A DNA stretch of 59,568 nt, filler included, from Basidiobolus meristosporus CBS 931.73 (GCA_002104905.1; 3 parts of 3 records of this genome joined end to end with filler, not necessarily neighbours in it), one strand, 5' to 3'. Shown: positions 20,549 to 47,184, numbered from the whole stretch's first letter. Made by a program: numbers and translations. Notes: a model not told the origin generated them from the letters alone.

Positions 20549-22070
20549 CTAGTTCGTCAACTTCTGAAGCTCTTCCTCCAGGATATCCATGCCAAGTTTT
20601 ACGTTTTCCAAAGTTGCCTGTGATCCCATATGGCCGATTCGGAAAATAACATTGGCTCCCTTGCCGTAGCTGAAAATGCATAGAATGCATTAGAACAGAT
20701 TGCTAAGAAATCCATGGAGCGCTGGCTGGTTAACTTACGATCCCCCAAGTGCAACTCCTCGAGCCTTGATTATGCTATCCAGCTTCTGCCATTCGACTCC
20801 CTCTGGTACAACCAATGCAGTAACAGAGGGAGAGTTCAGGTACTCCACCTCCCCATCAAGCCACAGTTTCAATCCCATCTTCTTAGCACGCTCGCGACAA
20901 TACTCTGCAATCTCTCTGTGTCTTTGATATTCACCCTCGACATCCTTAAGAATAAGAATCAATTGTTCATTGAGTGCATCAATGTGAGGCCAGTTATGTG
21001 TGTATGGCGCGAGTTGATCCTAGTTAACCAAGTCAGTATCACCCGGTGCAACAATATTGATCCACTCACGGTTACCTGGACAACATTCTTCCAAGGCCAT
21101 AATGCGTCATATCCAGCATAATTCACCTTCTCGATCTGCTTCCAGGCTCTCTCGCTAACAGTAACAATAGAGAGTGTGCTCTCGCATGACAACGCCTTTT
21201 GAGTGCCAAGCAAACCTTATTAGCAGGTCAATTTGTAAGTTGGCCATTTTGATTGGACAAACAGGAACTCCTATACCTAGATCAATGCACCATCCATTCA
21301 CATCTACCGGCACGGCAACACCGGCGCTAACAAAATCAACACAGTAGAGCCCATTATTTTCGCGCACGTATTTTCCAATGATTTCTACGGCCGGTGAGTT
21401 CAAAACCCCAGTAGGGGTGTCACAAAGAACCGCTATTCAAGTACAAATGAGTACAACCGAAGGATTTTGCCTCCGGGATATCCTCTTTAGTCAGAGCCCG
21501 AGAAACATACCTGTAACTAGATTGGGCTGGAACCGTTGAATTTTTTCTTTGACCTTTTCTACGTTGATGGCTTCATTGTATTCAAATGAGAGGAGCTCCA
21601 CCTTGACGTTTGGGTATCTGAGTTGTTTCACCATGTCGCTAAAACCATCTCCGTAGACCCCATTGCCAATACAAAGAACTCGAAATTCCTCAGGGAAATC
21701 GAACGGCCAAGGCAAAACACTTTTAATTGCCGACCATAGAGCAAGCATGCCTACAATCACGTTATATATTTGCCATAAGTGGCAAGATGAATGTCTAAGC
21801 TTACCCTCGCCACTCTGTATGACTACGCTAGAGCCTTCAGATGTCTTCACGTTTAATAACTCGCTCAAGTTATTACAAGTTTTCTCATACAGCGCAAAGA
21901 ATTCGGGTTCGACATCAGGACTACCATAGAATCTTTCTTGGTAGAGTTTTACAAGATGTTCTGGGACTACAGTAGGTCCTTCATTAGACAGAGTTAGCAC
22001 ATAGCTTCAAGAGGTATAACAGCGTAATATGCAGTTTACCAGGTACTAAGGCGGCAGTATATCTGTTCAT
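20549..22070 (-). CDS. Class V PLP-dependent aminotransferase (serine-pyruvate/alanine-glyoxylate-like), multi-exon
   Basis: Spliced model MNRYTAALVPGPT...; QSGEG, VDFVSA, GTQKAL (PLP lysine), FRIGHMG C-terminal motif; GT-AG introns. Confidence 0.88.
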
Positions 22071-23169
22071 GATGTAGTCTTGAAAATGAACTTTGAGCAT
22101 TTATAATCATCTGTGATCAATTCACCGAACGAAAGCTGAGAAACCTATCAATTCGTCAGAAATCGATGTTCCACAAGATTGACTTAAATCTCAAGGAAAC
22201 CCAGTTACTCCTAATAGCAATCGCAAATAAGATGGCCATTCTTGCGTAGCTAGATAAACAGTCCAGGGGTGTGGGAGTGTTATATTTGGAGCTCAATATT
22301 CTGGATATGAGCAGAATCAGGTGTGCGAAGCAACCAGTCAATTCCAGTACAAAGCAAGGGATTCTTAGTGATCCTTCCTAATAGTTGATAGACATAAGCA
22401 TGACCTGGCGCAAGTGCAATGCGGGCATTATTATTGTGTATGGAAGTGAGCCTGGGATTCAATTAGATATCTTGATACATGTGATTGTTAGGGCTACGTA
22501 TCTAAGATCAGTATATTTAGGTTGCTTCAGTATTTGTTATTCAGCAGCGTGTTAGGGATGTGCTTTCCATAAGCCTGTCATCAAGAGACATCTGCATACC
22601 TGCAAGTCTATGATGTTTGAGGTTGTTACTTTTGTAGCTGCAAGATTGTTATAGCGATTGCTTTTTGTGTTTAGTGCATCAGAATACATGGATCAGTGAT
22701 ACTGAGCCATTCAAGAAGCATTTAGCTTTGAGTATGCCCTCTATACCTCACACCAGATGGTAGTATTGAAAGCGCCAGGCCGATCTCGTGATTTGTAGCA
22801 TATATTAGTGGTTCCAGGAGAAATAGGAATAATAGCTTGATATCATCGCAAACAACGTAGGAACTAATTCCCTACAGTTCTCTCTCATCGTGCAGATGAA
22901 GGGTGTATGCTCTATGACACGATTGTTATGATGAGATAGGTTGTCATCACACTAAGGGGAAGCATTGCTGGCTTATTTAATAATATAATGTATTCAATGC
23001 TAATATTCCCTTTGGATGTAACATCTAGTTTCACAAGACGCAGACACTCAAACTGAATATATCAGATTGGAGCACACACTGTCTTCGAACGATTTGTCAT
23101 GAATGCCGGTACTAGTTAATCCATATCTGTTTCAACATTAGGGGGCAGGGGGAATCAAAACTCGACGCA

Positions 23170-23178
23170 TATAAAAGA
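23170..23178 (+). promoter_or_regulatory. Putative TATA box of the repeat polyprotein gene
   Basis: ATATAAAAG ~90-140 bp upstream of the candidate ATGs. Confidence 0.45.
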
Positions 23179-23264
23179 CGCAGATGCTCTTTGTAAACAG
23201 GCATCGGAGTCCAGCTCTTCAAGTCTCCCACTAAAGCACTTTCATTTGCACCTTCATCATCACA

Positions 23265-26200
23265 ATGACTGCCTTTATGAACAACGTTTCCACTGCTTCC
23301 AACGGAGGAATAATGAAGAAGGCTCTTATTATGATGATGATCTCCCCACTGTTCACATCAAGCAATGTCATGGCCCTACCCTCTTTCGAAAGTAACGAGG
23401 TTATGATGGCCGAGGATATGGTTGATGGTCGCAGCGATTTTCTAGGTGCAAATAATCGGGCATTCGAGCAGCTCTTCAAGAGACAACAAACTGAAGAAAC
23501 TGCAAGTGCTGATGTGGGAAGGGCTACTTCTGATATTCAAGAAGCTACCAAGCGTGATCTTTATGAAGTGGAGATGACTGATGTTGAGGCTGAACTTCTC
23601 GAGAAGTTCATGAAGCTTAATACAAAGAACATTGTACCATTGCTGAAGAAGTATGTTCCGCTCCTCAAGACTTTTGCACCCAACTACCTGAACCTCACTG
23701 TCAAGGATCTCTTGAAGAAGCTCGGTCTTCACAAGCACCTTGTCACTCTTGGTCTTGACGAGGCTCCAGCCCCAGCTCCAGTTGAGGGAGGCGAGAACTA
23801 CAGCAAGCGTGACCTCTATGAGGTTGAGATGACTGACGCTGAAGCCGAAGCTTTCGGAAAACTCAAGCAGCTCATTCCCAACGTCAAGAAGCTTGTTCCT
23901 TTGTTGAAGACATATGGTCCAATCATCAAGGCCATGGCTCCCAACTACCTGAACCTCACTGTCAAGGACCTCTTGAAGAAGCTCGGTCTTCACAAGCACC
24001 TTGTCACTCTTGGTCTTGATGAGGCTCCAGCCCCAGCTCCAGTTGAGGGAGGCGAGAACTACAGCAAGCGTGACCTTTATGAGGTTGAGATGAGTGATGC
24101 TGAAGCTGAGGCTTTCGAACGGTTCAAGAAGCTTATTCCCAACACCAAGAAGTTCATTCCTATGTTGAAGAAGTACATTCCGCTCCTCAAGACTTTTGCA
24201 CCCAACTACCTGAACCTCACTGTCAAGGACCTCTTGAAGAAGCTCGGTCTTCACAAGCACCTTGTCACTCTTGGTCTTGATGAGGCTCCAGCCCCAGCCC
24301 CAGTTGAGGGAGGTGAGAACTACAGCAAGCGTGACCTTTATGAGGTCGAGATGAGTGATGCTGAAGCTGAGGCTTTCGGTCAACTCAAGAAACTTCTTCC
24401 CAACGTCAAGAAACTTGTTCCAATGTTGAAGAAGTATGTTCCGCTCCTCAAGACTTTTGCACCCAACTACCTGAACCTCACTGTCAAGGACCTCTTGAAG
24501 AAGCTCGGTCTTCACAAGCACCTTGTCACTCTTGGCCTTGACGAGGCTCCAGCCCCAGCTCCAGTTGAGGGAGGTGAGAACTACAGCAAGCGTGACCTTT
24601 ATGAGGTTGAGATGACTGACGCTGAAGCCGAAGCTTTCGGAAAACTCAAGCAGCTCATTCCCAACGTCAAGAAGCTTGTTCCTTTGTTGAAGACATATGG
24701 TCCAATCATCAAGGCCATGGCTCCCAACTACCTGAACCTCACTGTCAAGGACCTCTTGAAGAAGCTCGGTCTTCACAAGCACCTTGTCACTCTTGGTCTT
24801 GATGAGGCTCCAGCCCCAGCCCCAGTTGAGGGTGGTGAAAACTATAGCAAGCGTAACCTTTATGAGGTTGAGATGAGTGATGCTGAAGCCGAAGCTTTTG
24901 GAAAACTCAAGCAGCTTGTCCCTTTGTTGAAGACATATGGTCCAATCATCAAGGCCATGGCTCCCAACTACCTGAACCTCACTGTCAAGGATCTCTTGAA
25001 GAAGCTCGGTCTTCACAAGCACCTTGTCACTCTTGGTCTTGACGAGGCTCCAGCCCCAGCCCCAGTTGAGGGAGGTGAGAACTACAGCAAGCGTGATCTC
25101 TATGAGGTTGAGATGACTGACGCTGAAGCCGAAGCTTTCGGAAAACTCAAGCAGCTCATTCCCAACGTCAAGAAGCTTGTTCCTTTGTTGAAGACATATG
25201 GTCCAATCATCAAGGCCATGGCTCCCAACTACCTGAACCTCACTGTCAAGGACCTCTTGAAGAAGCTCGGTCTTCACAAGCACCTTGTCACTCTTGGTCT
25301 TGACGAGGATCCAGCCCCAGCCCCAGTTGAGGGAGGTGAGAACTACAGCAAGCGTGACCTCTATGAGGTTGAGATGAGTGATGCTGAAGCCGAAGCTTTT
25401 GGAAAACTCAAGCAGCTTGTCCCTTTGTTGAAGACATATGGTCCAATCATCAAGGCCATGGCTCCCAACTACCTGAACCTCACTGTCAAGGATCTCTTGA
25501 AGAAGCTTGGTCTTCACAAGCACCTTGTCACTCTTGGTCTTGACGAGGCTCCAGCCCCAGCCCCAGTTGAGGGAGGCGAGAACTATAGCAAGCGTGACCT
25601 CTATGAGGTTGAGATGAGTGATGCCGAAGTCGAAGCCTTTGGAAAACTCAAGCAGCTTATTCCTAAACTCAAGAAACTCATTCCTCTGTTCAAGAAGAAA
25701 TCCTCTCTCAAAGCTGCCGCTTCCAAAGCAGGCAAGGGCCCAGTCAAACGCGACCTCTATGAGGTTGAGATGACTGACGCTGAAGCCGAAGCTTTCGGAA
25801 AACTCAAGCAGCTCATTCCCAACGTCAAGAAGCTTGTTCCTTTGTTGAAGACGTATGGTCCAATCATCAAGTCCATGGCTCCCAACTACCTGAACCTCAC
25901 TGTAAAGGACCTCTTGAAGAAGCTCGGTCTTCACAAGCACCTTGTCACTCTTGGTCTTGATGAGGCTCCAGCCCCAGCTCCAGTTGAGGGAGGTGAGAAC
26001 TACAGCAAGCGTGACCTCTATGAGGTTGAGATGAGTGATGCTGAAGCCGAAGCTTTCGGAAAACTCAAGCAGCTCATTCCCAACGTCAAGAAGCTTGTTC
26101 CTTTGTTGAAGACATATGGTCCAATCATCAAGGCCATGGCTCCCAACTACCTGAACCTCACTGTCAAGGATCTCTTGAAGAAGCTCGGTCTTCACAAGCA

Positions 26201-26396
26201 CCTTGTCACTCTTGGTCTTGATGAGGCTCCAGCCCCAGCCCCAGTTGAGGGAGGTGAGAACTACAGCAAGCGTGAAGTTATCCCTGGTCGTGATGATGGT
26301 CAAGAGACATCAAAAGAAACCGACTTGGGAGGCCCCACTCCTGGAAATCCCAACGATGAAGAGGCTGCCAAGAAAAAAGCTGAAGTCAAAGCTTGA
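23265..26396 (+). CDS. Secreted Kex2-processed repeat polyprotein (KEP) with 11 cationic amphipathic peptide units
   Basis: Single-exon 1043-aa ORF; hydrophobic leader from the ATG at 23313 (MKKALIMMMISPLFTSSNVMA); 11 KR-delimited units (23556-26273), each with acidic DLYEVEMxDAEAEA, a Lys/Leu-rich core and mostly an acidic DEAPAPAPVEGGENYSKR tail. Confidence 0.9.
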   Translation: MTAFMNNVSTASNGGIMKKALIMMMISPLFTSSNVMALPSFESNEVMMAEDMVDGRSDFLGANNRAFEQLFKRQQTEETASADVGRATSDIQEATKRDLYEVEMTDVEAELLEKFMKLNTKNIVPLLKKYVPLLKTFAPNYLNLTVKDLLKKLGLHKHLVTLGLDEAPAPAPVEGGENYSKRDLYEVEMTDAEAEAFGKLKQLIPNVKKLVPLLKTYGPIIKAMAPNYLNLTVKDLLKKLGLHKHLVTLGLDEAPAPAPVEGGENYSKRDLYEVEMSDAEAEAFERFKKLIPNTKKFIPMLKKYIPLLKTFAPNYLNLTVKDLLKKLGLHKHLVTLGLDEAPAPAPVEGGENYSKRDLYEVEMSDAEAEAFGQLKKLLPNVKKLVPMLKKYVPLLKTFAPNYLNLTVKDLLKKLGLHKHLVTLGLDEAPAPAPVEGGENYSKRDLYEVEMTDAEAEAFGKLKQLIPNVKKLVPLLKTYGPIIKAMAPNYLNLTVKDLLKKLGLHKHLVTLGLDEAPAPAPVEGGENYSKRNLYEVEMSDAEAEAFGKLKQLVPLLKTYGPIIKAMAPNYLNLTVKDLLKKLGLHKHLVTLGLDEAPAPAPVEGGENYSKRDLYEVEMTDAEAEAFGKLKQLIPNVKKLVPLLKTYGPIIKAMAPNYLNLTVKDLLKKLGLHKHLVTLGLDEDPAPAPVEGGENYSKRDLYEVEMSDAEAEAFGKLKQLVPLLKTYGPIIKAMAPNYLNLTVKDLLKKLGLHKHLVTLGLDEAPAPAPVEGGENYSKRDLYEVEMSDAEVEAFGKLKQLIPKLKKLIPLFKKKSSLKAAASKAGKGPVKRDLYEVEMTDAEAEAFGKLKQLIPNVKKLVPLLKTYGPIIKSMAPNYLNLTVKDLLKKLGLHKHLVTLGLDEAPAPAPVEGGENYSKRDLYEVEMSDAEAEAFGKLKQLIPNVKKLVPLLKTYGPIIKAMAPNYLNLTVKDLLKKLGLHKHLVTLGLDEAPAPAPVEGGENYSKREVIPGRDDGQETSKETDLGGPTPGNPNDEEAAKKKAEVKA

Positions 26397-26665
26397 TAGA
26401 GAATTTCTCAACATTCAAATTTCCTTCTAATAAAAATCGCTTGACACAATCATATACTTGTACTCTGAGAATTGAACTATTAAATGATGCATCCGGTGCA
26501 TGTGAGAGTGAAAGGTAGACATCAAAGGCATTTATCAATGTAAGGATTTGAAATCGAAGGAAGAAAATGGGCAAAGGATTTTGTTTCTAGCAAGCTCATA
26601 GCATATGCGCTCAAGTCAATGGTGCTTTATTGTGGTAAACCAAAGTGAGGGTAAGTTTTTGATAT

Positions 26666-27759
26666 TCATAGAATATTCGATGTATCTTTTCTGAATATCA
26701 GGCTCATTGTCCTCAAAAGCTTCATATCCCATCCAACTGAATACACCGCTCTTGGCCATTGTGCTGTCAAGGTATGAACGATTGCATTCGTTACATGCTC
26801 TGCGGTGGGGGCCAAAGATGCCATCCTTTCCATGTAGACTCTCAGCAGTTCAAGTTGTTGGATCTGTTGCCCAAAGGCAATTTTGGAAGTTGACTTCGAA
26901 GGGTCCAAGAGCTCAATCAAATCGAGAAAATCCTGTCGTAGGCCAATCAGTTGGAGCTGAAGTCGGTTACGCTGAATCATATCTTACCTCGGTAAGGATT
27001 CTACACTCTGGGAATGCGGTGCTGTATATGCCTAGTAAGGGGTATAAACATTTTGATATAGATCCGTGAATGCCAAGTGAAAGTATCACCTGCTTCAATG
27101 ATACTACACGATAGCCCCGTCTGTCTCGTACTCTCCAGCCAACGAGCAAATGTCTGCTCAAATCCCTTGAACACCGAGGTATTACTTAGTTGATGTTTAT
27201 AAAGCAGTCTCGGTGCGGTTGAGCCAAAAATCACGACCCTTCCGCTCTTATCAAGTAAAGAAATCAGCTCGTTCAGAAAACCCACACTCTTGCCTAATCT
27301 AAGCTCTAATCTGGAGGCAAGGTCACACGAATCCCACTCGTCTGGTAAGGCAGGGAAGACCCTTGAGTTGTGTATTATACCAACAAGCTGGCCCGATATA
27401 TCTTCAAGCAGCCGCTTGAGATCTTGGTGCGTTTGGTACGGCGTATGATGGGATTGGAGGTTGACCAACACCCCAAGTATCTCTTTCTTACCACCTTTTA
27501 AAGTGTGGATATTCTCCAGTTCTGACCAATTTCGAACCCCGATAATCACCGTGTAGCCTAGCTCACTCAAACAGAGGGCTATATCCCGGCCAGCACCTAG
27601 CCCTCCTCGCGTAATAAAGACGACCGGGCGCTGAGCCCTCAATGTGCTTGGTCTGGGCGGCTTCTGCCCCGATAGCAAATGTGATATGCTTTGGTTGAAT
27701 GAGTGAATCCAATCAAGCAGTTCATCCAGCAAATACAAAACGAATCCCGATAGATGCAT
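26666..27759 (-). CDS. Short-chain dehydrogenase/reductase-like protein, multi-exon, degenerate active site
   Basis: VVFITRGGLGAGRDIALCLSELGYTVIIGVR Rossmann start, GRVVIFGS, SIIEAG, and C-terminal AIVHTLTAQWPRAVYSVGWD typical of SDRs; probable ATG at 27759. Confidence 0.7.
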
Positions 27760-28696
27760 CAAGATAGATAGGCAATTGGATATCGCTGAGATGGAGACCC
27801 GAGGAAGTGACGGATTTGCAAAAAGACTAGGATGGGCCGTCCTGGGGCTGCCTAAGATGAATAATACAGCTACGTGACCTTGACCTCTGCAGTCAGTATT
27901 TAAGCAAAAGAGGCACACACGCCACATCGTACACCATCCTGACCTGAAGGGCAGCCTGTTCTATGCAACTACTCGAGGAACTCATTGAGGAGCCACAATT
28001 GAAGGGTAACCTCATATGGGAACTTGCAGAGGACACGATTGGTAAGTTTTCGCGATAACAGATGAAGCACCATTGGACAACGTAATGTATCTCATAATTG
28101 AGATCTCCCCCTTACTTGTGGATGTACGCGGAGATGATCTAGGACGTACATGTCACTGGCTGTTCCGCACGATCGTCCCAATGCGTTTTGGGACCCATTT
28201 CGCATAGACCCAAACAGCAGCGCTACGACATAGAGGAGGGCCCCCATCGAAGGCGGTTATTATTGTACTGACCTGACCTGTTTCATTCTCCGCAAAACCT
28301 ACATTATTTCCGGTAGAAACCCCTGTATTCACCATATTGTAACCATGTTTGTGAATTCCATCATTCATAGACTCAACCTGGAGCAGGGATCGGGGGAACG
28401 TGGCTCTTCCTTCTGGAATACCAGTTGTCCCGCTGCGATAGAACTGCTTGGCAAGGATCACTAACCCCATTTGGCAGGTGTGGTCGACATAGGTATATAA
28501 ATGTATGGGCATGCATGGATCGTAGAGTATTAGAGAAATCTCACAAAACCTGATTTATATAATTTACAAATCCAAGTAACTCCTACGCGAAGATACAAGC
28601 AATGGTTATATACATGAATACGTTCAAAATCTCTCTGGGATAACCAAATGTGTGGGTAGCTAGAAGTTTACATGATACTTGGGATGAGTACAGCGG

Positions 28697-29254
28697 CTAA
28701 ACCAGCCCCTTTCTTTTCTTGTAGAGCTGAGGGTACTTGATGAGAATGGCGGAGAATAGTAGGAAACTAAGGAGTTGCTGCGATTTGGTGCACGACTCTG
28801 CCACAGCAAGGAACCCGATCTCGTCGTCGGTTTTGGGCCACTCAAATAAGGCTATAAGGTTCTTCTCGATCGCGGTATAGCAGCACAGGAACTGTCCCTC
28901 TTGATAATCCCAGAGGTAGTCGATCGCATCGAGGTTAAAGGTATAGACACCGAAGTCTCCCTTGGGGTAGGTGAGGTTCAATCTTAAACCTAATGAATTA
29001 CTAGTGATTTTGATGTAGCCTAGACTGTGTCGCGTTTTGGCTGTGTAGACCTCGGTTCCAGAAGGCTGCGCTCGCAACACTACCTTGTGTTTGAACAGAC
29101 GTGTGGATTCCTTCGAGAGGGAATAGATGTCCTGATGGTCACTTTCACTGTAGATGAAGATTTTCCGCTTGTCCACAGCCTTATTGAATTTGTAGATGTG
29201 GTCTAGGTCCGGGTGCTGGGAGAGCAAGCTACTGGAACTTGATATGTTAGGCAT
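28697..29254 (-). CDS. Hypothetical protein (185 aa), possibly tubby-C/LURP-like beta fold
   Basis: Single-exon ATG-to-stop ORF with globular composition and an upstream TATA-like sequence; the family guess is weak. Confidence 0.55.
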   Translation of the reverse strand: MPNISSSSSLLSQHPDLDHIYKFNKAVDKRKIFIYSESDHQDIYSLSKESTRLFKHKVVLRAQPSGTEVYTAKTRHSLGYIKITSNSLGLRLNLTYPKGDFGVYTFNLDAIDYLWDYQEGQFLCCYTAIEKNLIALFEWPKTDDEIGFLAVAESCTKSQQLLSFLLFSAILIKYPQLYKKRKGLV

Positions 29255-31114
29255 AGGTGCAGAATGTTATGTGGTCGATGTAGCAATGGCAAGGGCTTTA
29301 CTCTGGGAAGTAAAACGAATACTGGTGTAAAGCAAAGGGGCCGAGGGAAATTGGCGGAGTAGATAGGAGTGTCAATAGAAAGGTATTTAGCTTAGTCGAT
29401 TGGAATGGGTCTCAATGGACCGAGGGGCTGCATAGTTTATATAAGCCAGTGACAACTCAGTAGGACAAAGTGGTATCAGCAGGCTAGATATGTTTCATCC
29501 CTACTGTTTATAGCATCATGACTGCTGGTGAACGAAGCTCATCTACAATCCTCGGCGAGTATTGGCTCCCCCAAGAACCAAGTAATCATCGGATACTGGA
29601 TTCGGCAAGAGAATTAAAAGCTCTCCAGCTGCTCTCAAACGTACTCCAAATTCTCAGACGAACGTTGACATCATACCTGTTGTGATCAGAGCCAATGAGC
29701 CGCCGGGATTCAGATTTTCCAAGCAATCAGTTCCTAAAGTAGAGCTGCTACACGTAAAATAGCAGAGTCTGCTCTAGACAGCCAATCCGCGTCGCCTCAG
29801 GTCATACAAGCAATCCGAAGGCTTATGATCGATAGATTGAACGGATATACATCTGCCGTCGTGTCAATACCCATCCCTTCATTTTCCGATTAGCAAGCAC
29901 CTTGGTGGCATGGCTGACAAGTCGTTTCAGACCGAATCACTTCAGAGGGATGTTCCAAGTCCGGACTCTGGCTTGGTGGACACGTGAGCAGTTCTCCACC
30001 AGTCAATGCTCTAGATACCATTTACTTTTCGATCCATGATCTAACGGGCTTCTTAATCCGGAGGGATGGCCAATATAGCCAGCGCATGAAGCGTGTTTGA
30101 GGCTGAGGCCCATGTCAAGCGACGACATAGTAGGTTTGCTGAAGCTAAACAATACTGGCACTGGATTTCGATATTTGGGAACCGATAGGTAAGCAATGCA
30201 CAATATTAGGCAACCCGATCAGATTAGGCAAATGCTTGACTTCAGATCTGCGCGCGAAATGAGGAAACCTCGATGACGCCAAAATGACCGATCTGGGAGT
30301 AAAGCATAGATGCTGAGCCGGCATCATGAGGACCGTGGATTGTGAAGAATATGAAGATGAAGGCGAAACAAGTGCCGCCTCCTTCCGCGATTGAAAATTT
30401 GCACAGCTTACGGTGGATGACGCGATTCAGTCAAAAACTCGTTTGTATAACGAGCCCTGCTGTCAACTTACCTTATTAGTGGGCAATTACCTTGCATGCC
30501 GCCATGTGTTGGTTGACAAGCAGTCACCGCCGATGTAATGTGGAATATTATATAAATAAATACACCACAAAATCTTGACTAAGAGATGCCCTTATATGGA
30601 CCAGGTAACATGACCTACATTCCTTAGTATACATAACCTGTTCACCGAACTGTGCCTCCTCTTCTTTCGTCATGTTCACTAAGCCCTGCTCCTAGACTTG
30701 CCAGAAACCAGTTTGGCTTTCGACATTCAGCTTCCATTCGGACAGCCGGAGGAGCAAAATCCGGCCGGATGCCTTGCAACATCGCTTCTGCTACAAACCC
30801 TTGTGGTTGACAACGACCCAATATAACTTGGTCAAACTACAGATTAGGCTGATTCACGACTTGCCTGATTAAAAATAGTCTCTATGGTCGAATTACAAGG
30901 CTCAATTTTGTTCTGATTCGGCTAAAATTAGCCTTATAGGCCAGAGGTTGGCCATCGTATCGACCTCGATGGTTCCAAGATCGCGATCATTGGCGAATGA
31001 CTTGAGATTGTTCCGTAGTGGTAATGCAGGATTTCGTATAATATTCGATTGTGACTTCTTTCTGGTGTTCTCTTCTACAAATTTGACCAGTATAACAATC
31101 GTTGAGAGTTTTCT

Positions 31115-31624
31115 ATGTATGTCTGACTGCTTCCTTACAAGATGACTAGTTGCCACAGAGTAACATTTCTCCCCAACCAGGTCCTCTCCCTATGATGCTC
31201 CCTCGTCTGGTGCCCCAACTGGTGGCCCCAACAAAAGCAAGGTGGTCCAACAACAGGTAGATGAAGTGGTGAACATCATGCAAGATAATGTGAACCGTGT
31301 AATGGAGCGCGGTGAGCGTTTAGATACGCTGAACAACAAAGCTGGTAAGTATACGGGAGATGTGTGATCAGATGTCACGCCAAACTAAGCTTTTTTGCCA
31401 TCTAGAGGATCTTGAAAATGGTGCTTTACAATTCCGCCGAGGCGCAAATCGAGTTCGCAAAAATATGTGGTGGAAGAACTTTCGACTGAAGTTGATCATC
31501 ATAGCCATCGTCGTAATAATTCTTCTGGTTGTAATAAGTAAGTTCCATAAGTTCACTATCCCCCCTTCATGTGATACTAACTAACACCAAAACAGTTGTC
31601 CCTATAGTGACCAAGAATAAGTAA
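31115..31624 (+). CDS. SNC1: Synaptobrevin/VAMP v-SNARE
   Basis: Spliced ...VQQQVDEVVNIMQDNVNRVMERGERLDTLNNKAEDLENGALQFRRGANRVRKNMWWKN + TM helix; the start exon is inferred (AT|gtatgt). Confidence 0.92.
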
Positions 31625-40328: not shown

Positions 40329-40938
40329 CAATGTATATGTAAGCTAATTTTGTAGCTGTTGATTCCCCTTTATTCTGCTGTACCTCTCGTAGTATACTTG
40401 TTTATGATGATGTAACTATGCCATATTTACCTAGCTGTACACCAAATAGCTCTAATAGTTACCACCTATATGTATATTAATTATACCCAGCTATAACTGC
40501 ATTTTAATCCCGGCTTTTGAATACTCTTCTTGTCTGCATTAGGTATAGCAGTGTTTTATCAGGTATTCATATATTAAATTTGTCATATATTTAGCACAAG
40601 AAAGTAGGTAGTATACTGAGTACTGTACTTGCATTATGAGGGTGCTATATATCACATGGGCTCTTTGGCCATCTCTGGGGCTTTTCATGTTCTGGGTACC
40701 TGATGTATTGGTGAGATATTCTAAGTAAATCCCATCAAGCAATTTAGGCAGACTTCTCTAAGATTAGTAAACAATGATCCAAGTGACTAAGTAAACGGAG
40801 TATATAGGTGTAAAGCAGTATGTACAGCACTCCCAGTCACCTGACTATTCCTATTAACTAGGCCTAACTATAATATAGGTGTTCAGATCTGTCTCTGGTT
40901 TACAGCTTTAAGATAGCCTCATTACAGCCAGCCACTTG

Positions 40939-42878: not shown

Positions 42879-44201
42879 TTAGGAGGGGGGGGGGAACCAC
42901 CGGTTGGTGTAATCTTTATTGTCAATCATTGTGAAAATAAAGAAGTCAGGGATTGATTCTGGAGTCTTGTAACATATTTGTACAGACACTTTGGGTTAAT
43001 ATGTAGATAGGTTGCTATTTCTTGTAGTTCCTCTGCATTGAATAGAGTGTTGAGAGGGAGTGGCGGTAGCACTAGTAATAATAACTGATGATCTATGTAT
43101 TGTGATGTGCTTTTGCCAATTGGTGATATAAAGCAAAGAAATGGGGTTTGCTGAGTTACATACTCTTGCCATAGTTGATTAAGATACTTGCTATATGCTT
43201 CTTTGGGGTTTTTACTCCCCTCTATTGCTTTGGCAAATTGCTGGACTTTTGGGCACCCAATGATAGTTGCCCAACAGGAGTTATTTTGAAGCATCTTGCA
43301 AGAAATCCATGCTTGTATCAACTCATTTGTTGATTTATGGAGTTGAATATGTAGTCTTGTACGGAGGTACAAAATTCTAATTGAATAAGGGAGTAGTCCA
43401 AAAGTTGCCAGGACTGCGTGGTGATACTGTGTTGGTGGGAGCCATGGTAATAAAGTATAAATGCTGTGAGAAACAAACTTGTCCAGTTTTGTCAGGTATC
43501 TTGTTGGAATAGGCATTATTGCCAATCCAAACTCCAGTACTGGGAGCACAAACTGCTTGAGTAACAAGTGACATTGGCTCAAAGGTATATCTGGTGGTGT
43601 AACAGAGACTAACTTGTGTAAAGCATGCCGTGCAAGTGCTATTTGCCTCCACACATGTGCTTTTACATCCAGACCAGATGCAGTAAACAGAAGCCCTAGA
43701 TAGATGACAGTTTCTGCTGGGCGTAGAGTTTGAGAGTTCAGCATAATACTGCATCCAACTGGCTTGGTTTTTGCCATTGAGAGACTAAGATTGTTTTGTG
43801 TAAGGTAGCTGACAATCAGGTTAGAGTCTTTTTCCAAATTACTGGAAGAGATACAAATATCATCTGTGTATAAGGTTGTAAGCGCAGAGGCTTCTAAGGC
43901 AGGAAAGTTGTTCATAAAGATGGCAAATAGTAGAGGGCCTAGTACAGATCCCTGCACTACCCCATTTGGAACATCATAAGTGGTAGATTGCATATTTGGA
44001 TGCAAAATGTAGGCCTTTGAGTCCTGATATAAAGCCATGATAAGAGCTGTAATTGTAGGTCCAGCAAAAGCTTCAGGTTTTCTCCAAAGTAGGTTACGGT
44101 CAACTGCATCAAATGCATGGGTAATATCCAAGAGTACTGCTGGAAATTTGTTACAGAGTGTGTGGTCATGGCTTAGCATGACAGCCATTTCTAGCAAGAC
44201 T
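42879..44201 (-). mobile_element. Telomeric non-LTR unit C (5'-truncated RT)
   Basis: ORF 42926-44197 with DITHAFD, GVVQGSVLGPLLF, LYTDD, YLG; 3' motif at 42879-42947. Confidence 0.87.
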
Positions 44202-45926
44202 TTAGGGGAGGGAAAGTCACCAAGTCGGTGAAATCTTTATTTGAGTTAAGAACTAATCTAAGTACAAATAAAGAAGCCAATTAAGAGGTCTAGAACCTCT
44301 CTAATAAGTAATCTAATTTATGTTTTGTTTCATCTCTAATGTTTGTTTCAATAAAGTAAAGCTCATCAGGGGTAAATATAAAATTCAGGGGTTTTGGGGG
44401 AAGTACAAATTGTAGATGTTTCTGATCAATATAATCCAAGACTGGAACCCAGCCTGGGATTAGGTGTAGTAGGAAAGGTGTGTGGACTTGTAAGTAGCTC
44501 TGCCACATAGATCTTAGATGGTTCTGAGCCAGTAGTCTTGGTTTCTCAGCTTTTTGAAGTTTTGAAGCAAGCTCTGTTACTACAGCAGAGCCAACCAGGT
44601 TGTGCCAGCAAGAAGATTTTAGGGAGGAGTTAGATTGAAGCCATTGTTTGATGGAGGGGTTATGTGATTTCTGATGTTTGACTAGGAAGGAAGCACGGAG
44701 ATAGATCATTCGGATTTGGTATGGGTAGAACCCAAAGGCTCCATTAGTTGCATGGATATAGGGAGATACTGGAAGATAAGGTACCAAGGATCTGATACAC
44801 TGATGGAGAAATTTATCCAGGCGGTGAAGCTCTCTGGAGGTTAGGGGTATAATGTGGAGACCAAATTCAAGTACCGGCAGTACATACTGCTTCAGAAGTA
44901 TAGGGATCTTTTGAATTGGAGTGTCTGGAGTGACTACTACTAGAAGCTTTTTGAGAGCCTGTTGGGCAAGACGGATCCTATTATTCAGGTGGAGCTTTGA
45001 GTCAATCCCATGTTGACAAAATGGCAGACCTAGATACATTGCAGTTTGTTGTGGCAGAATGCTAGTGTTCTGTATAGTTGTAGTGCACCCAATTGGGACT
45101 GTCTTGGAAATTGAGAGTGAGAGGTTGTTGGCAGCCAAGTACTTCTCAATGTTGGCAGTGTCTGCTATGGGATTAGGAGTAGCAATCTTGATATCATCCG
45201 CATAGAGAGTTAGTAGTGGATAGGGAGAGTCTGGTGAGGGGCCTTTTGGAAATAAAGGAAAGTCATGTAGGAGTATCACAAATAGTAAGGGACCTAGTAC
45301 AGATCCTTGGACTACTCCATTTGGAACCTCATAAGTCTCTGATGTGCAACTTGGATGCAAAATTTTGGCTGAGTTCTCACAAAATAGAGAACGTACAAGA
45401 AGGGTCATTGGTAGTGTGGTAACTGCTAATAGCTTTCTCCAAAGCAGAGCTCTGTCCACAGAGTCAAAGGCTTTAGTAATGTCAAACAGAATGGTTGGCA
45501 ATGAGAATTGAAGTGAATGATCATGGCTTAGCACTACAGCCATATCCAAGGAGAGTTTGGGCATGAAGCCAAACTGAGAAGGATGGAATGGATATAGTTG
45601 AGATTGCAAGGATCTTGCTATTATAAGCTCAAAGATTTTCAGGCAGGTTGGTAGGAGTGAAACTGGCCGGTAAGAACCTGGGAGTGAGTGTTTCCCCTTC
45701 CTTTTGTATAAGGGTATTACATTTGCCTGTGACCAGGCCTTTGGGGTAGTCAATTGTTGGGCACAGATAGAGTAGAATGGGATAAGTAAGTGACTCATTT
45801 TGGAGTAGCACACCCGGAGTAGATTGTAGGTAATCAAGTCATGTCCAGGTGCCGTATTTGCAGGAAGCTTCTTTAAAATTTTCTCCAGAAGCTTTGCTGA
45901 AATCAAAATTGGAGATGTTGGACTGC
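44202..45926 (-). mobile_element. Telomeric non-LTR unit B (LINE-type reverse transcriptase, no endonuclease present)
   Basis: Open frame 44290-45926: APGHDLITY, YRPVSLL, QFGF, DITKAFD, GVVQGSVLGPLLF, LYADD, YLG; 3' motif at 44202-44279. Confidence 0.9.
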
Positions 45927-46955
45927 TTAGGGTTAGGGGAGGGAAAGTCACCAAAGTAGGTGAAATCTTTATTTGATTTCAGACAAGTCTAACTACAAAT
46001 AAAGAAGCCAGCTGGGAATAGAAGATTCCCAAAGTAAAAACTAAGTTGAATATGAATAAATCTAAGCTAAAGTTAAGGCAGTATCCCAGAGTACACTGGA
46101 GTTCAGGTTCATGGGGGAGTGAAGTAGATAAGCTTGAGAGATATAATAATCTTTCAGGAAGTGGGTAACAGCAGGTGAAGGGGAGTTTTTGATAAGTGAA
46201 GTGAATCTTGAGAGCAGAGATTCCTCTAATGAGAAGGTCTTGTAAACTGGAGAATCAGGAAACTCTTTAAAGGCATGGTCAGTAGGTTCCCAGTAAAACT
46301 GGTCAGAGACATTTTCAGAGAATTGTGTTGCAATACTTTTGTCAAGTACTACCTCCAGAGTGTGATGGTTGATAAATCTCATGTTAACAATTTTGGATAA
46401 ATTGTAACCTTGTTGCTTGAGATACATCCTATGCTCAGATATGGGAATAAACTCCACATTGGCAAAGTAGCAGACAGTCCAGTCTGTAGCAGGAGGTAAA
46501 TCAGAAGTGGCAGGAAACTTTCTTTTAGTCTTGGGAGGAGCAGCAGCATGTCTTGAGGAAGCAGGAACAGGCTTTTTGACAGCTTCAGAGTAGGAAGAGT
46601 GAGCAGGAGCAGGTGATTCTTGGGGAGTCTTGTTGACAGGAAGAGTTGGCACAGGGACAATAGATTCTTGCAGATCAGAAAAGGCAGAGAACAGCTTTTG
46701 AACTTGTTTCTTGAGTAAAGCATTTTCAGCTTCAACAAGTGCAAGCCTTTCCTCAAGGAAGGAAATCTGAAGGGAATGGAGTGAAGGCATAAGATATAAG
46801 AAGAAGAGGGTTGGATGGGGTGGGTGGGTGGGAAAATTAGCAGGGAGAAGAGAAGGAAGGAGCAAAAATTCCAGAAGTCAGAATTTATAGATGGATGGAC
46901 AAGGGTAGATGGATGGATTATTCCTGGGTTAGGAAAATTAGCAGGGAGAAGAGAA
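45927..46955 (-). mobile_element. Telomeric unit A carrying only an ORF1/gag-like gene
   Basis: ORF1-like CDS followed directly by the shared 3' motif (45927-46010) ending in CCCTAACCCTAA; abuts the telomere. Confidence 0.75.
46062..46790 (-). CDS. Non-LTR ORF1-like protein (coiled coil + SYSEAVKK + RRM-like region)
   Basis: ATG at 46790; LEERLALVEAENALLKKQVQKL heptads; SYxxA motif common in LINE ORF1; no CCHC knuckle. Confidence 0.65.
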   Translation of the reverse strand: MPSLHSLQISFLEERLALVEAENALLKKQVQKLFSAFSDLQESIVPVPTLPVNKTPQESPAPAHSSYSEAVKKPVPASSRHAAAPPKTKRKFPATSDLPPATDWTVCYFANVEFIPISEHRMYLKQQGYNLSKIVNMRFINHHTLEVVLDKSIATQFSENVSDQFYWEPTDHAFKEFPDSPVYKTFSLEESLLSRFTSLIKNSPSPAVTHFLKDYYISQAYLLHSPMNLNSSVLWDTALTLA

Positions 46956-47184
46956 GGGTTAGGGTTAGGGTTAGGGTTAGGGTTAGGGTTAGGGTTAGGG
47001 TTAGGGTTAGGGTTAGGGTTAGGGTTAGGGTTAGGGTTAGGGTTAGGGTTAGGGTTAGGGTTAGGGTTAGGGTTAGGGTTAGGGTTAGGGTTAGGGTTAG
47101 GGTTAGGGTTAGGGTTAGGGTTAGGGTTAGGGTTAGGGTTAGGGTTAGGGTTAGGGTTAGGGTTAGGGTTAGGTTAGGGTTAGG
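46956..47184 (+). repeat. Telomere (TTAGGG)n, ~38 units
   Basis: Uninterrupted GGGTTA array at the contig end (one TTAGG variant), G-rich strand pointing outward. Confidence 0.98.

Follow-up and report, generated by a model that had tools for sequence, protein, structure and literature searches.

An Eleven-Unit Repeat Precursor of the Kex2-Processed Type in Basidiobolus meristosporus: Layout, Selection, and Predicted Products

Introduction

The Kex2-processed repeat proteins (KEPs) are defined by a signal peptide, at least three repeats, and dibasic boundaries, with the repeats ranging in size from 3 to 352 amino acids (aa; PMC6339444). These proteins are widespread in fungi, though the function of the product is known for very few of them (PMC9769878). 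In a survey of 1461 assemblies, Basidiobolus meristosporus CBS 931.73 was the richest of all, with 43 KEPs, a set that may include the gene considered here (PMC7329392). That gene occupies positions 23265–26396 on the plus strand of the window, by which we mean the whole stretch of CBS 931.73 DNA that was analyzed: 59,568 nucleotides (nt), filler included, in which three parts from records of the assembly GCA_002104905.1 are joined end to end and are not necessarily neighbors in the genome. Judging from its sequence, the product is very probably a KEP precursor.

Like the KEPs described so far (PMC6339444, PMC7329392), the product has a signal-peptide-type leader, at least three tandem repeats bounded by Lys-Arg (KR), and a unit size within the known range; it differs from most in that its 87-aa unit falls in the rare class above 51 aa and carries both an internal three-block charge plan and a heptad sub-repeat of its own. 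Among the nearest described systems, Rep1 of Ustilago maydis, a protein of 12 repeats, yields on KEX2 cleavage 10 peptides of 34–53 aa that form amphipathic fibrils on the hyphae (PMC3133707). The Candida albicans precursor Ece1 is also secreted and cut at KR into several peptides, one of which, candidalysin, is membrane-damaging; as summarized in PMC7329392, only some of its moieties are repeated and the toxin is one of eight. The Basidiobolus precursor, which has no homology to Ece1 by phmmer, contains instead ten near-identical copies, each neutralized by its own acidic blocks. In the alpha-factor-type precursors the KR is likewise followed by an acidic stretch with Asp/Glu-Ala dipeptides in even register, but in the present units that X-Ala run begins only at residue 9, and the length of the unit is some six times that of the pheromone units. 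Finally, the KEPs that are precursors of ustiloxin-type RiPPs (peptides made on ribosomes and modified after translation) share the Kex2-bounded repeats, whereas here no tailoring-enzyme gene lies beside the precursor and the cores are long, rather than of 4–15 aa.

Results

Layout of the Precursor

Positions 23265–26396 constitute a single uninterrupted open reading frame (ORF) of 1043 codons that encodes 1043 aa plus a stop, without any internal stop, and the public NCBI gene call on the source contig, MCFE01000856.1, has identical bounds. A first-pass annotation, made from the sequence alone, had described a leader followed by eleven KR-delimited units, and this description agrees with what was obtained upon cutting the 1043-aa product after every KR: a 73-aa leader, a 24-aa spacer, 11 units, and a 40-aa tail (Table 1). 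From the first to the eleventh, the units measure 85, 87, 87, 87, 87, 80, 87, 80, 52, 87, and 87 aa, seven of them thus having 87. Neither Cys nor Trp is present in the precursor. The Tandem Repeats Finder returned a period of 261 nt, with 7.9 copies, 88% matches, and a score of 3033, and a 21-nt period nested within that repeat; correspondingly, the first 30 residues of the core consist of a 7-aa (21-nt) sub-repeat with a Pro at every seventh residue, and units 6 and 8 are shorter by exactly one heptad.

The typical unit, as quoted in the first-pass annotation and found to be exact for units 2 and 5, comprises an acidic 14-mer with a net charge of −6, a 55-aa core with a charge of +9 (10 Lys, 1 Asp), and an acidic tail with a charge of −4. 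The core occurs in two types, B in units 1, 3, and 4, and A in units 2, 5–8, 10, and 11. Each full unit carries two N-X-S/T sequons, NLT and NYS, which add up to 20 across the repeats; the NLT-type N-glycosylation sequon occupies a mid-core position and is kept, as NLT or NLS, in the B. ranarum protein P0002 described below. Unit 9 retains the acidic block and a Lys-rich segment, but its core has no C-half, and neither the two sequons nor the acidic tail are present; it is an old and divergent short unit. The KR of that unit is encoded by AAACGC and not by AAGCGT, and about 100 nt are missing by comparison with the neighboring units.

The leader was read manually in three homologues, and consists of a conserved 19-aa n-region with a basic K-K, an 11-aa hydrophobic core, and small residues at −3 and −1 (V-x-A, V-x-A, and A-x-A in the three proteins), after which comes L-P. 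On that reading the precursor has the signal peptide of the KEP definition; its 11 units compare with the minimum of three tandem repeats, and the KR at every unit end supplies the dibasic boundaries, for which KR, RR, or KK would qualify. An alternative start at Met17 was rejected, the B. ranarum P0002 having a Leu at that position and the 16 residues upstream being conserved. At the other extreme of the protein, the tail has no hydrophobic end, and therefore no glycosylphosphatidylinositol (GPI)-type signal.

Selection Within the Array

To describe the divergence within the array, we compared the proportions of synonymous (pS) and nonsynonymous (pN) differences among the seven 87-aa units. 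In the unit flanks the synonymous changes greatly exceeded the replacements, with a pS of 0.5–0.63 versus a pN of 0.03 in the acidic 14-mer, and of 0.16–0.39 versus 0–0.02 in the acidic tail. In the N-half of the core the pS was about 0.43 and the pN 0.16–0.25, and it is there that the replacements concentrate. The C-half of the core, in unit 2 and at the equivalent positions of every full unit, is nearly identical in nucleotides (pS 0–0.05), and such near-identity between two regions of synonymous change suggests either that gene conversion has acted locally or that the nucleotide sequence itself is constrained.

Of the 17 nucleotide columns that vary outside unit codons 15–44, 15 fall on the third codon position of the plus frame. 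Because the variable sites follow that frame, we discarded a 953-aa antisense ORF spanning the repeat array (23442–26303, minus strand) as a mirror artifact of a stop-free repeat. The repeats also have a stronger codon bias than the neighboring ORFs (AAG:AAA, 109:20; TTA in 0 of 164 Leu codons), a circumstance that might weakly point to high expression. By these sequence measures, the ORF is a genuine protein-coding gene whose units are under purifying selection.

Relatives in Basidiobolus ranarum

When 1.84 billion representative proteins were searched exhaustively with phmmer, four matches came up, of which only two were true relatives, both from B. ranarum (GCA_040143965.1); the homologue search that the first-pass annotation had proposed thus furnished two relatives, but no characterized homologue by phmmer or in the PDB and Foldseek comparisons. 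The fourth match, P0004 (908 aa, E 6e-7), proved to be an unrelated repeat protein containing Cys and Trp, and word-based searches with the whole protein, P0002, and the unit profile retrieved nothing beyond the queries themselves. In P0002 (389 aa, K7432_002218) the leader and the F-K-R pro-site recur, along with two complete units and a third that is degenerate. The public model of the other relative, P0003 (126 aa), is mis-modeled and does not translate from its locus (10001–10455 of L003, JASJQH010000276.1), where the plain frame passes through the leader into the first unit and then runs off the contig end; we therefore regard it as a B. ranarum copy truncated where the assembly breaks off within the repeats, and as the syntenic one, since it adjoins the same class-V aminotransferase (Aminotran_5) as the gene in the window. 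When compared with window positions 20549–31584, the synteny is split, the P0003 contig sharing the upstream Aminotran_5 and the P0002 contig the downstream synaptobrevin, an arrangement that suggests a segmental duplication or a rearrangement of the locus. About 5 kb downstream of P0002 there is a small gene with a weak ShK-domain match (L002:16484–16962).

Between the two species the synonymous sites are near saturation. The pN was 0.13 in the pro-region, 0.13–0.18 in the acidic block, 0.31–0.44 in the core (about 0.31 in its N-half), 0.40–0.45 in the tail, and 0.36–0.60 in the spacer; for this comparison the reading frame of the truncated copy on JASJQH010000276.1 was included, although it was left out of the structure alignment. 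Within the unit it is hence the acidic block that is under the strongest constraint, both inside the array and between species.

Kexin Sites and Predicted Processing

There are 13 KR sites in the precursor, and every unit ends in one. The repeat region contains 120 Lys versus 12 Arg, 11 of which are the Arg of a unit-ending KR, and neither RR nor RK occurs. The KR does not vary across the 13 complete units of the two species, in which the junction Y-S-K-R / D-L-Y-E is the best conserved stretch. The confinement of Arg to KR, along with that invariance, would be hard to explain without a site-specific function, so that the KR sites look functional. In a two-unit AlphaFold model of low confidence, residues 67–95, which take in the tail, the KR, and the eight residues after it, are modeled as a coil of 29 residues with helical parts on either side, from which conformation we would expect the cut site to be exposed. 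The KR layout and the selection at the protein level thus bear out the description of a secreted-type, Kex2-type polyprotein of 11 repeated peptides.

The processing within each unit is another matter. The first-pass annotation had proposed acidic safety flanks that Kex2 and Ste13 would shed, but those flanks lie inside the KR-delimited unit, and the unit sequence contains no dibasic or other recognizable cleavage site between the flanks and the core. The dipeptides that follow the KR are D-L, Y-E, V-E, and M-T/S. The DA-EA-EA run that had been reported to be in register with the KR cut is so arithmetically, since it occupies positions 9–14; it is, however, preceded by those four dipeptides, none of which is X-Ala or X-Pro. 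The Ste13 signature, defined as X-Ala or X-Pro directly after the Kex2 dipeptide (PMC6339444), is accordingly absent from the units, and Ste13 would find no entry point. In unit 1 and in all the B. ranarum units, moreover, position 14 is Leu and not Ala.

Charge, Amphipathicity, and Predicted Structure

Across the units the core has a charge of +7 to +10, with about half of its residues being hydrophobic. Once the KR is removed, nevertheless, 10 of the 11 units have a net charge between 0 and −3, as do the two complete units of B. ranarum, so that the cationic product expected from the earlier description is not what the sequence predicts: assuming processing by kexin and a carboxypeptidase, the released peptides lack the net positive charge of a linear cationic antimicrobial peptide, and would acquire it only if a further protease took off the flanks.

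The amphipathicity that had been ascribed to the core as a whole is a property of its first 30 residues. This N-half has a hydrophobic moment (muH) of 0.42–0.56 at helical periodicity in both species, with p values of 0.002–0.05 versus shuffled sequences, whereas no amphipathicity is seen in the C-half (muH 0.25, p about 0.93). As read from the sequences, what is kept across species in the N-half is the amphipathic pattern, rather than the sequence itself.

AlphaFold2 was run on one unit, with a 13-row alignment, and on two units, and gave predicted local distance difference test (pLDDT) scores of 55 and 47, respectively, for which reason the models were used for secondary-structure tendency only. 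The helices are predicted at a pLDDT of only 45–65 in a sequence with a Pro every seven residues, and one of them, at residues 9–21, would span the junction of the acidic and basic blocks, where the flank was supposed to be cut. Foldseek found 0 matches in the PDB. Sequence searches of the PDB with one unit and with the unit profile had as their best match OppA, at an E of 0.04, which we judged to be a chance result. A Pfam scan of the precursor listed 20 families (SAMP2, MarR_2, and SUFU among them), but no single stretch passed alone, the scores being sums of weak repeat matches; those assignments were rejected as spurious.

Genomic Setting

About 38.5 copies of AGGGTT, a telomere repeat of the TTAGGG type with the G-strand on the plus strand, close the contig piece at window positions 46955–47184, indicating that the contig reaches a chromosome end, with the KEP gene lying some 20 kb from it. 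The neighbor genes encode the Aminotran_5 protein, two unknowns, a synaptobrevin, a P-type ATPase fragment, and a Band_7 protein, while the telomere-proximal neighbors are reverse-transcriptase ORFs. Among the genes beside the precursor, the neighbor annotation and Pfam revealed no DUF3328/UstYa, tyrosinase, P450, or methyltransferase; the earlier statement that no modifying enzymes are nearby consequently holds, in that no RiPP-type enzyme gene adjoins.

Several further features of the region were recorded. The GC skew rises steadily from about 41 kb of the window. Two adjoining ORFs at 42926–45954 on the minus strand match the Pfam family RVT_1 with E values of 2e-16 and 1e-21, and because they cover overlapping parts of the profile they resemble a tandem pair of retroelement copies next to the telomere, with a reading direction that leads inwards from it. 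At 45927–45938 there is a perfect interstitial telomere repeat of 12 nt, and degenerate ones are at 40936 and 42159. Downstream of the precursor, a 428-aa gene (26666–28470, minus strand) has no Pfam match; in its largest exon ORF (27001–27927) there is a glycine-rich stretch that resembles a dinucleotide-binding motif by eye only.

Table 1. Positions in the window of the precursor gene, its parts, and a putative upstream element.
Feature	Position	Strand	Basis or remark
TATA-like box TATAAAAG	23170–23177	+	Direct reading; 88 nt 5' of the first ATG; putative function
KEP precursor coding sequence (probable), complete, single-exon	23265–26396	+	ORF reading; NCBI gene call agrees
Signal-peptide-like leader, residues 1–37	23265–23375	+	Manual sequence reading, three homologues
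Pro-region, 36 aa, conserved, F-K-R end	23376–23483	+	Lowest between-species pN (0.13)
Acidic spacer, 24 aa, K-R end, poorly conserved	23484–23555	+	Between-species pN 0.36–0.60
Unit 1, 85 aa, divergent, type B core	23556–23810	+	KR splitting, unit alignment
Unit 2, 87 aa, type A	23811–24071	+	KR splitting, unit alignment
Unit 2, acidic block	23811–23852	+	
Unit 2, core N-half, amphipathic Pro-heptad	23853–23942	+	
Unit 2, core C-half with NLT sequon	23943–24017	+	
Unit 2, acidic tail	24018–24065	+	
Unit 2, KR	24066–24071	+	
Unit 3, 87 aa, type B core N-half	24072–24332	+	
Unit 4, 87 aa, type B core N-half	24333–24593	+	
Unit 5, 87 aa, type A	24594–24854	+	
Unit 6, 80 aa, type A minus one heptad	24855–25094	+	
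Unit 7, 87 aa, type A	25095–25355	+	
Unit 8, 80 aa, type A minus one heptad	25356–25595	+	
Unit 9, 52-aa variant	25596–25751	+	
Unit 10, 87 aa, type A	25752–26012	+	
Unit 11, 87 aa, type A	26013–26273	+	
C-terminal tail, 40 aa, non-repeat, net −4, plus stop codon	26274–26396	+	

Discussion

The gene had been put forward as a candidate new system. In the databases searched, and on the evidence of the sequence, it is rather an uncharacterized and genus-restricted KEP, and not a new system, because the class is well described—units of 3 to 352 aa included—and the strain is already the most KEP-rich of the 1461 assemblies surveyed.

For the fate of that precursor we favor the following account. 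The protein would enter the endoplasmic reticulum and lose its leader after residue 37, and in the late Golgi a kexin would cut after each KR, a Kex1-type carboxypeptidase then taking off the KR itself. The products would be a 36-aa propeptide, the spacer, ten peptides of 78–85 aa, one of 50 aa, and the tail. The main peptide would consist of three blocks, namely a strictly conserved acidic 14-mer, a Lys/Leu/Pro-rich center with a charge of +7 to +10, and an acidic low-complexity tail; since there is no site between these blocks, what is exported is most likely the peptide in its entirety, which would have a charge close to neutral (0 to −3), would probably be N-glycosylated, and would be produced in bulk from a single transcript. 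The amphipathic segment may then act at an interface, with the acidic blocks pairing with the basic ones within or between molecules. Such a peptide, with its oppositely charged blocks and its one long amphipathic segment, would best suit a coat that is surface-active or self-associating. By analogy with the Rep1 repellents we tentatively propose that these peptides are surface-active or form a coat on the surface of the fungus itself, rather than being a free lytic toxin; and for the complete statement, comprising both the KEP precursor and the coat-like function, our confidence is somewhat short of even.

Rep1 and the Basidiobolus precursor have a common plan, in that both are secreted, with about a dozen repeats and KEX2 sites, and give rise to about 11 amphipathic peptides in bulk, and both are without a Ste13 signature or a Cys-based fold. 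The Rep1 peptides, at 34–53 aa, are nevertheless shorter than the 78–85 aa of those of Basidiobolus, and form wall-bound amyloid fibrils, while the latter are predicted to be helical; a Pro at every seventh residue argues against a beta-amyloid in the amphipathic part, unlike the situation in Rep1.

Several observations weigh against the account that we favor. The analogy with a coat is one of architecture, because neither homology nor fold similarity connects the protein with Rep1: no sequence similarity to Rep1 was found, and no Ustilago protein was among the four phmmer matches from the 1.84 billion representatives. The leader, the pro-region, and the acidic block are conserved between species, while the cationic core evolves faster, and a conserved prepro part with a faster-evolving core is also typical of the precursors of antimicrobial peptides and toxins. 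Unit 9, for its part, stays cationic after KR removal (+5), and another protease could still free the core from the remaining units. The 19-aa n-region is unusually long for a signal peptide, and the low pLDDT makes the structural statements weak. In the literature search, finally, we found no expression, secretion, or peptide data on the precursor, nor any Basidiobolus papers linked to it.

Some of those same observations might be accommodated by the explanation given in the first-pass annotation, according to which the gene is a multi-copy factory of linear cationic membrane-lytic peptides whose acidic masks would be stripped off once Kex2 has cut, by Ste13-type or other proteases, to free a 55-aa core of charge +9. 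That explanation, which we consider unlikely, has a precedent in candidalysin, a lytic peptide from a Kex2-cut fungal precursor (as summarized in PMC7329392), and would agree with the subtelomeric location of the gene. The absence of a cleavage site between flank and core is nonetheless the chief argument against it, together with post-KR dipeptides that leave Ste13 no entry point under the definition given above, and a Leu at position 14 in unit 1 and in B. ranarum. The charge of the core and its content of hydrophobic residues are those of a lytic peptide, and its first 30 residues are amphipathic in the two species; but the C-half is not, there is a Pro every seven residues, a conserved N-glycosylation sequon lies inside the core, and 55 aa is long for a linear lytic peptide. 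Though the core evolves faster than the prepro and acidic parts, and the replacements within the array concentrate in its N-half, the most constrained part of the unit is the acidic block. The core is also predicted to be helical, at low confidence, yet the predicted helix crosses the supposed cut point; and while unit 9 keeps a positive charge with its acidic block still attached, the kexin products of the other ten units have a net charge of 0 to −3.

A variant of the membrane-active explanation, which we deem distinctly doubtful, would retain the acidic block as a functional part. The peptides would then be Basidiobolus-restricted and self-neutralized, with the conserved acidic block as an inhibitor fused to a proline-punctuated cationic amphipathic helix, and would be activated extracellularly, either by a further cut or by changed conditions.

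That the precursor is left uncut, or is cut only in part, and serves as a long glycoprotein of repetitive sequence, secreted or associated with the wall, whose KR linkers are flexible spacers, seems to us improbable. The 20 sequons of the repeats and the low-complexity, Pro/Ala/Gly-rich linkers would suit such a protein, and the repetitive effector Rsp3 is described as being processed by Kex2 in part (PMC7329392); but an Arg complement almost confined to KR amid 120 Lys, the invariance of KR in the two species, and the junction around it being the best conserved stretch all argue for cleavage, and the precursor has no Ser/Thr-rich, GPI-signal, or wall-anchoring feature. Least probable of all are diffusible signals, pheromone- or hormone-like, as in the alpha-factor-type KEPs, because in spite of the multi-copy KR-delimited architecture and the EA-rich stretch near the N-terminus of the unit, the 78–85-aa peptides are far above the 9–24-aa class that dominates the signaling KEPs (PMC6339444), no Ste13 signature directly follows the KR, and the sequence is compositional and amphipathic, with a core that diverges fast between species and no compact conserved epitope.

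Almost nothing is known about KEPs in the early-diverging fungi, and this gene is an unusually clean case, with eleven long units, clear selection, a conserved acidic block, and an amphipathic pattern that is kept despite drift. B. meristosporus is a fungus of the frog gut, and its genus includes an occasional human pathogen. The identity of the product would show what role a large-unit KEP fulfills in a zoopagomycete, whether as a coat, an adhesive, or a membrane-active peptide. More generally, a cationic core flanked by acidic stretches is a toxin precursor only if something can separate them; and should the peptides turn out to be self-neutralized, the precursor would embody a logic new for the fungal KEPs, with eleven copies per transcript from a subtelomeric gene.

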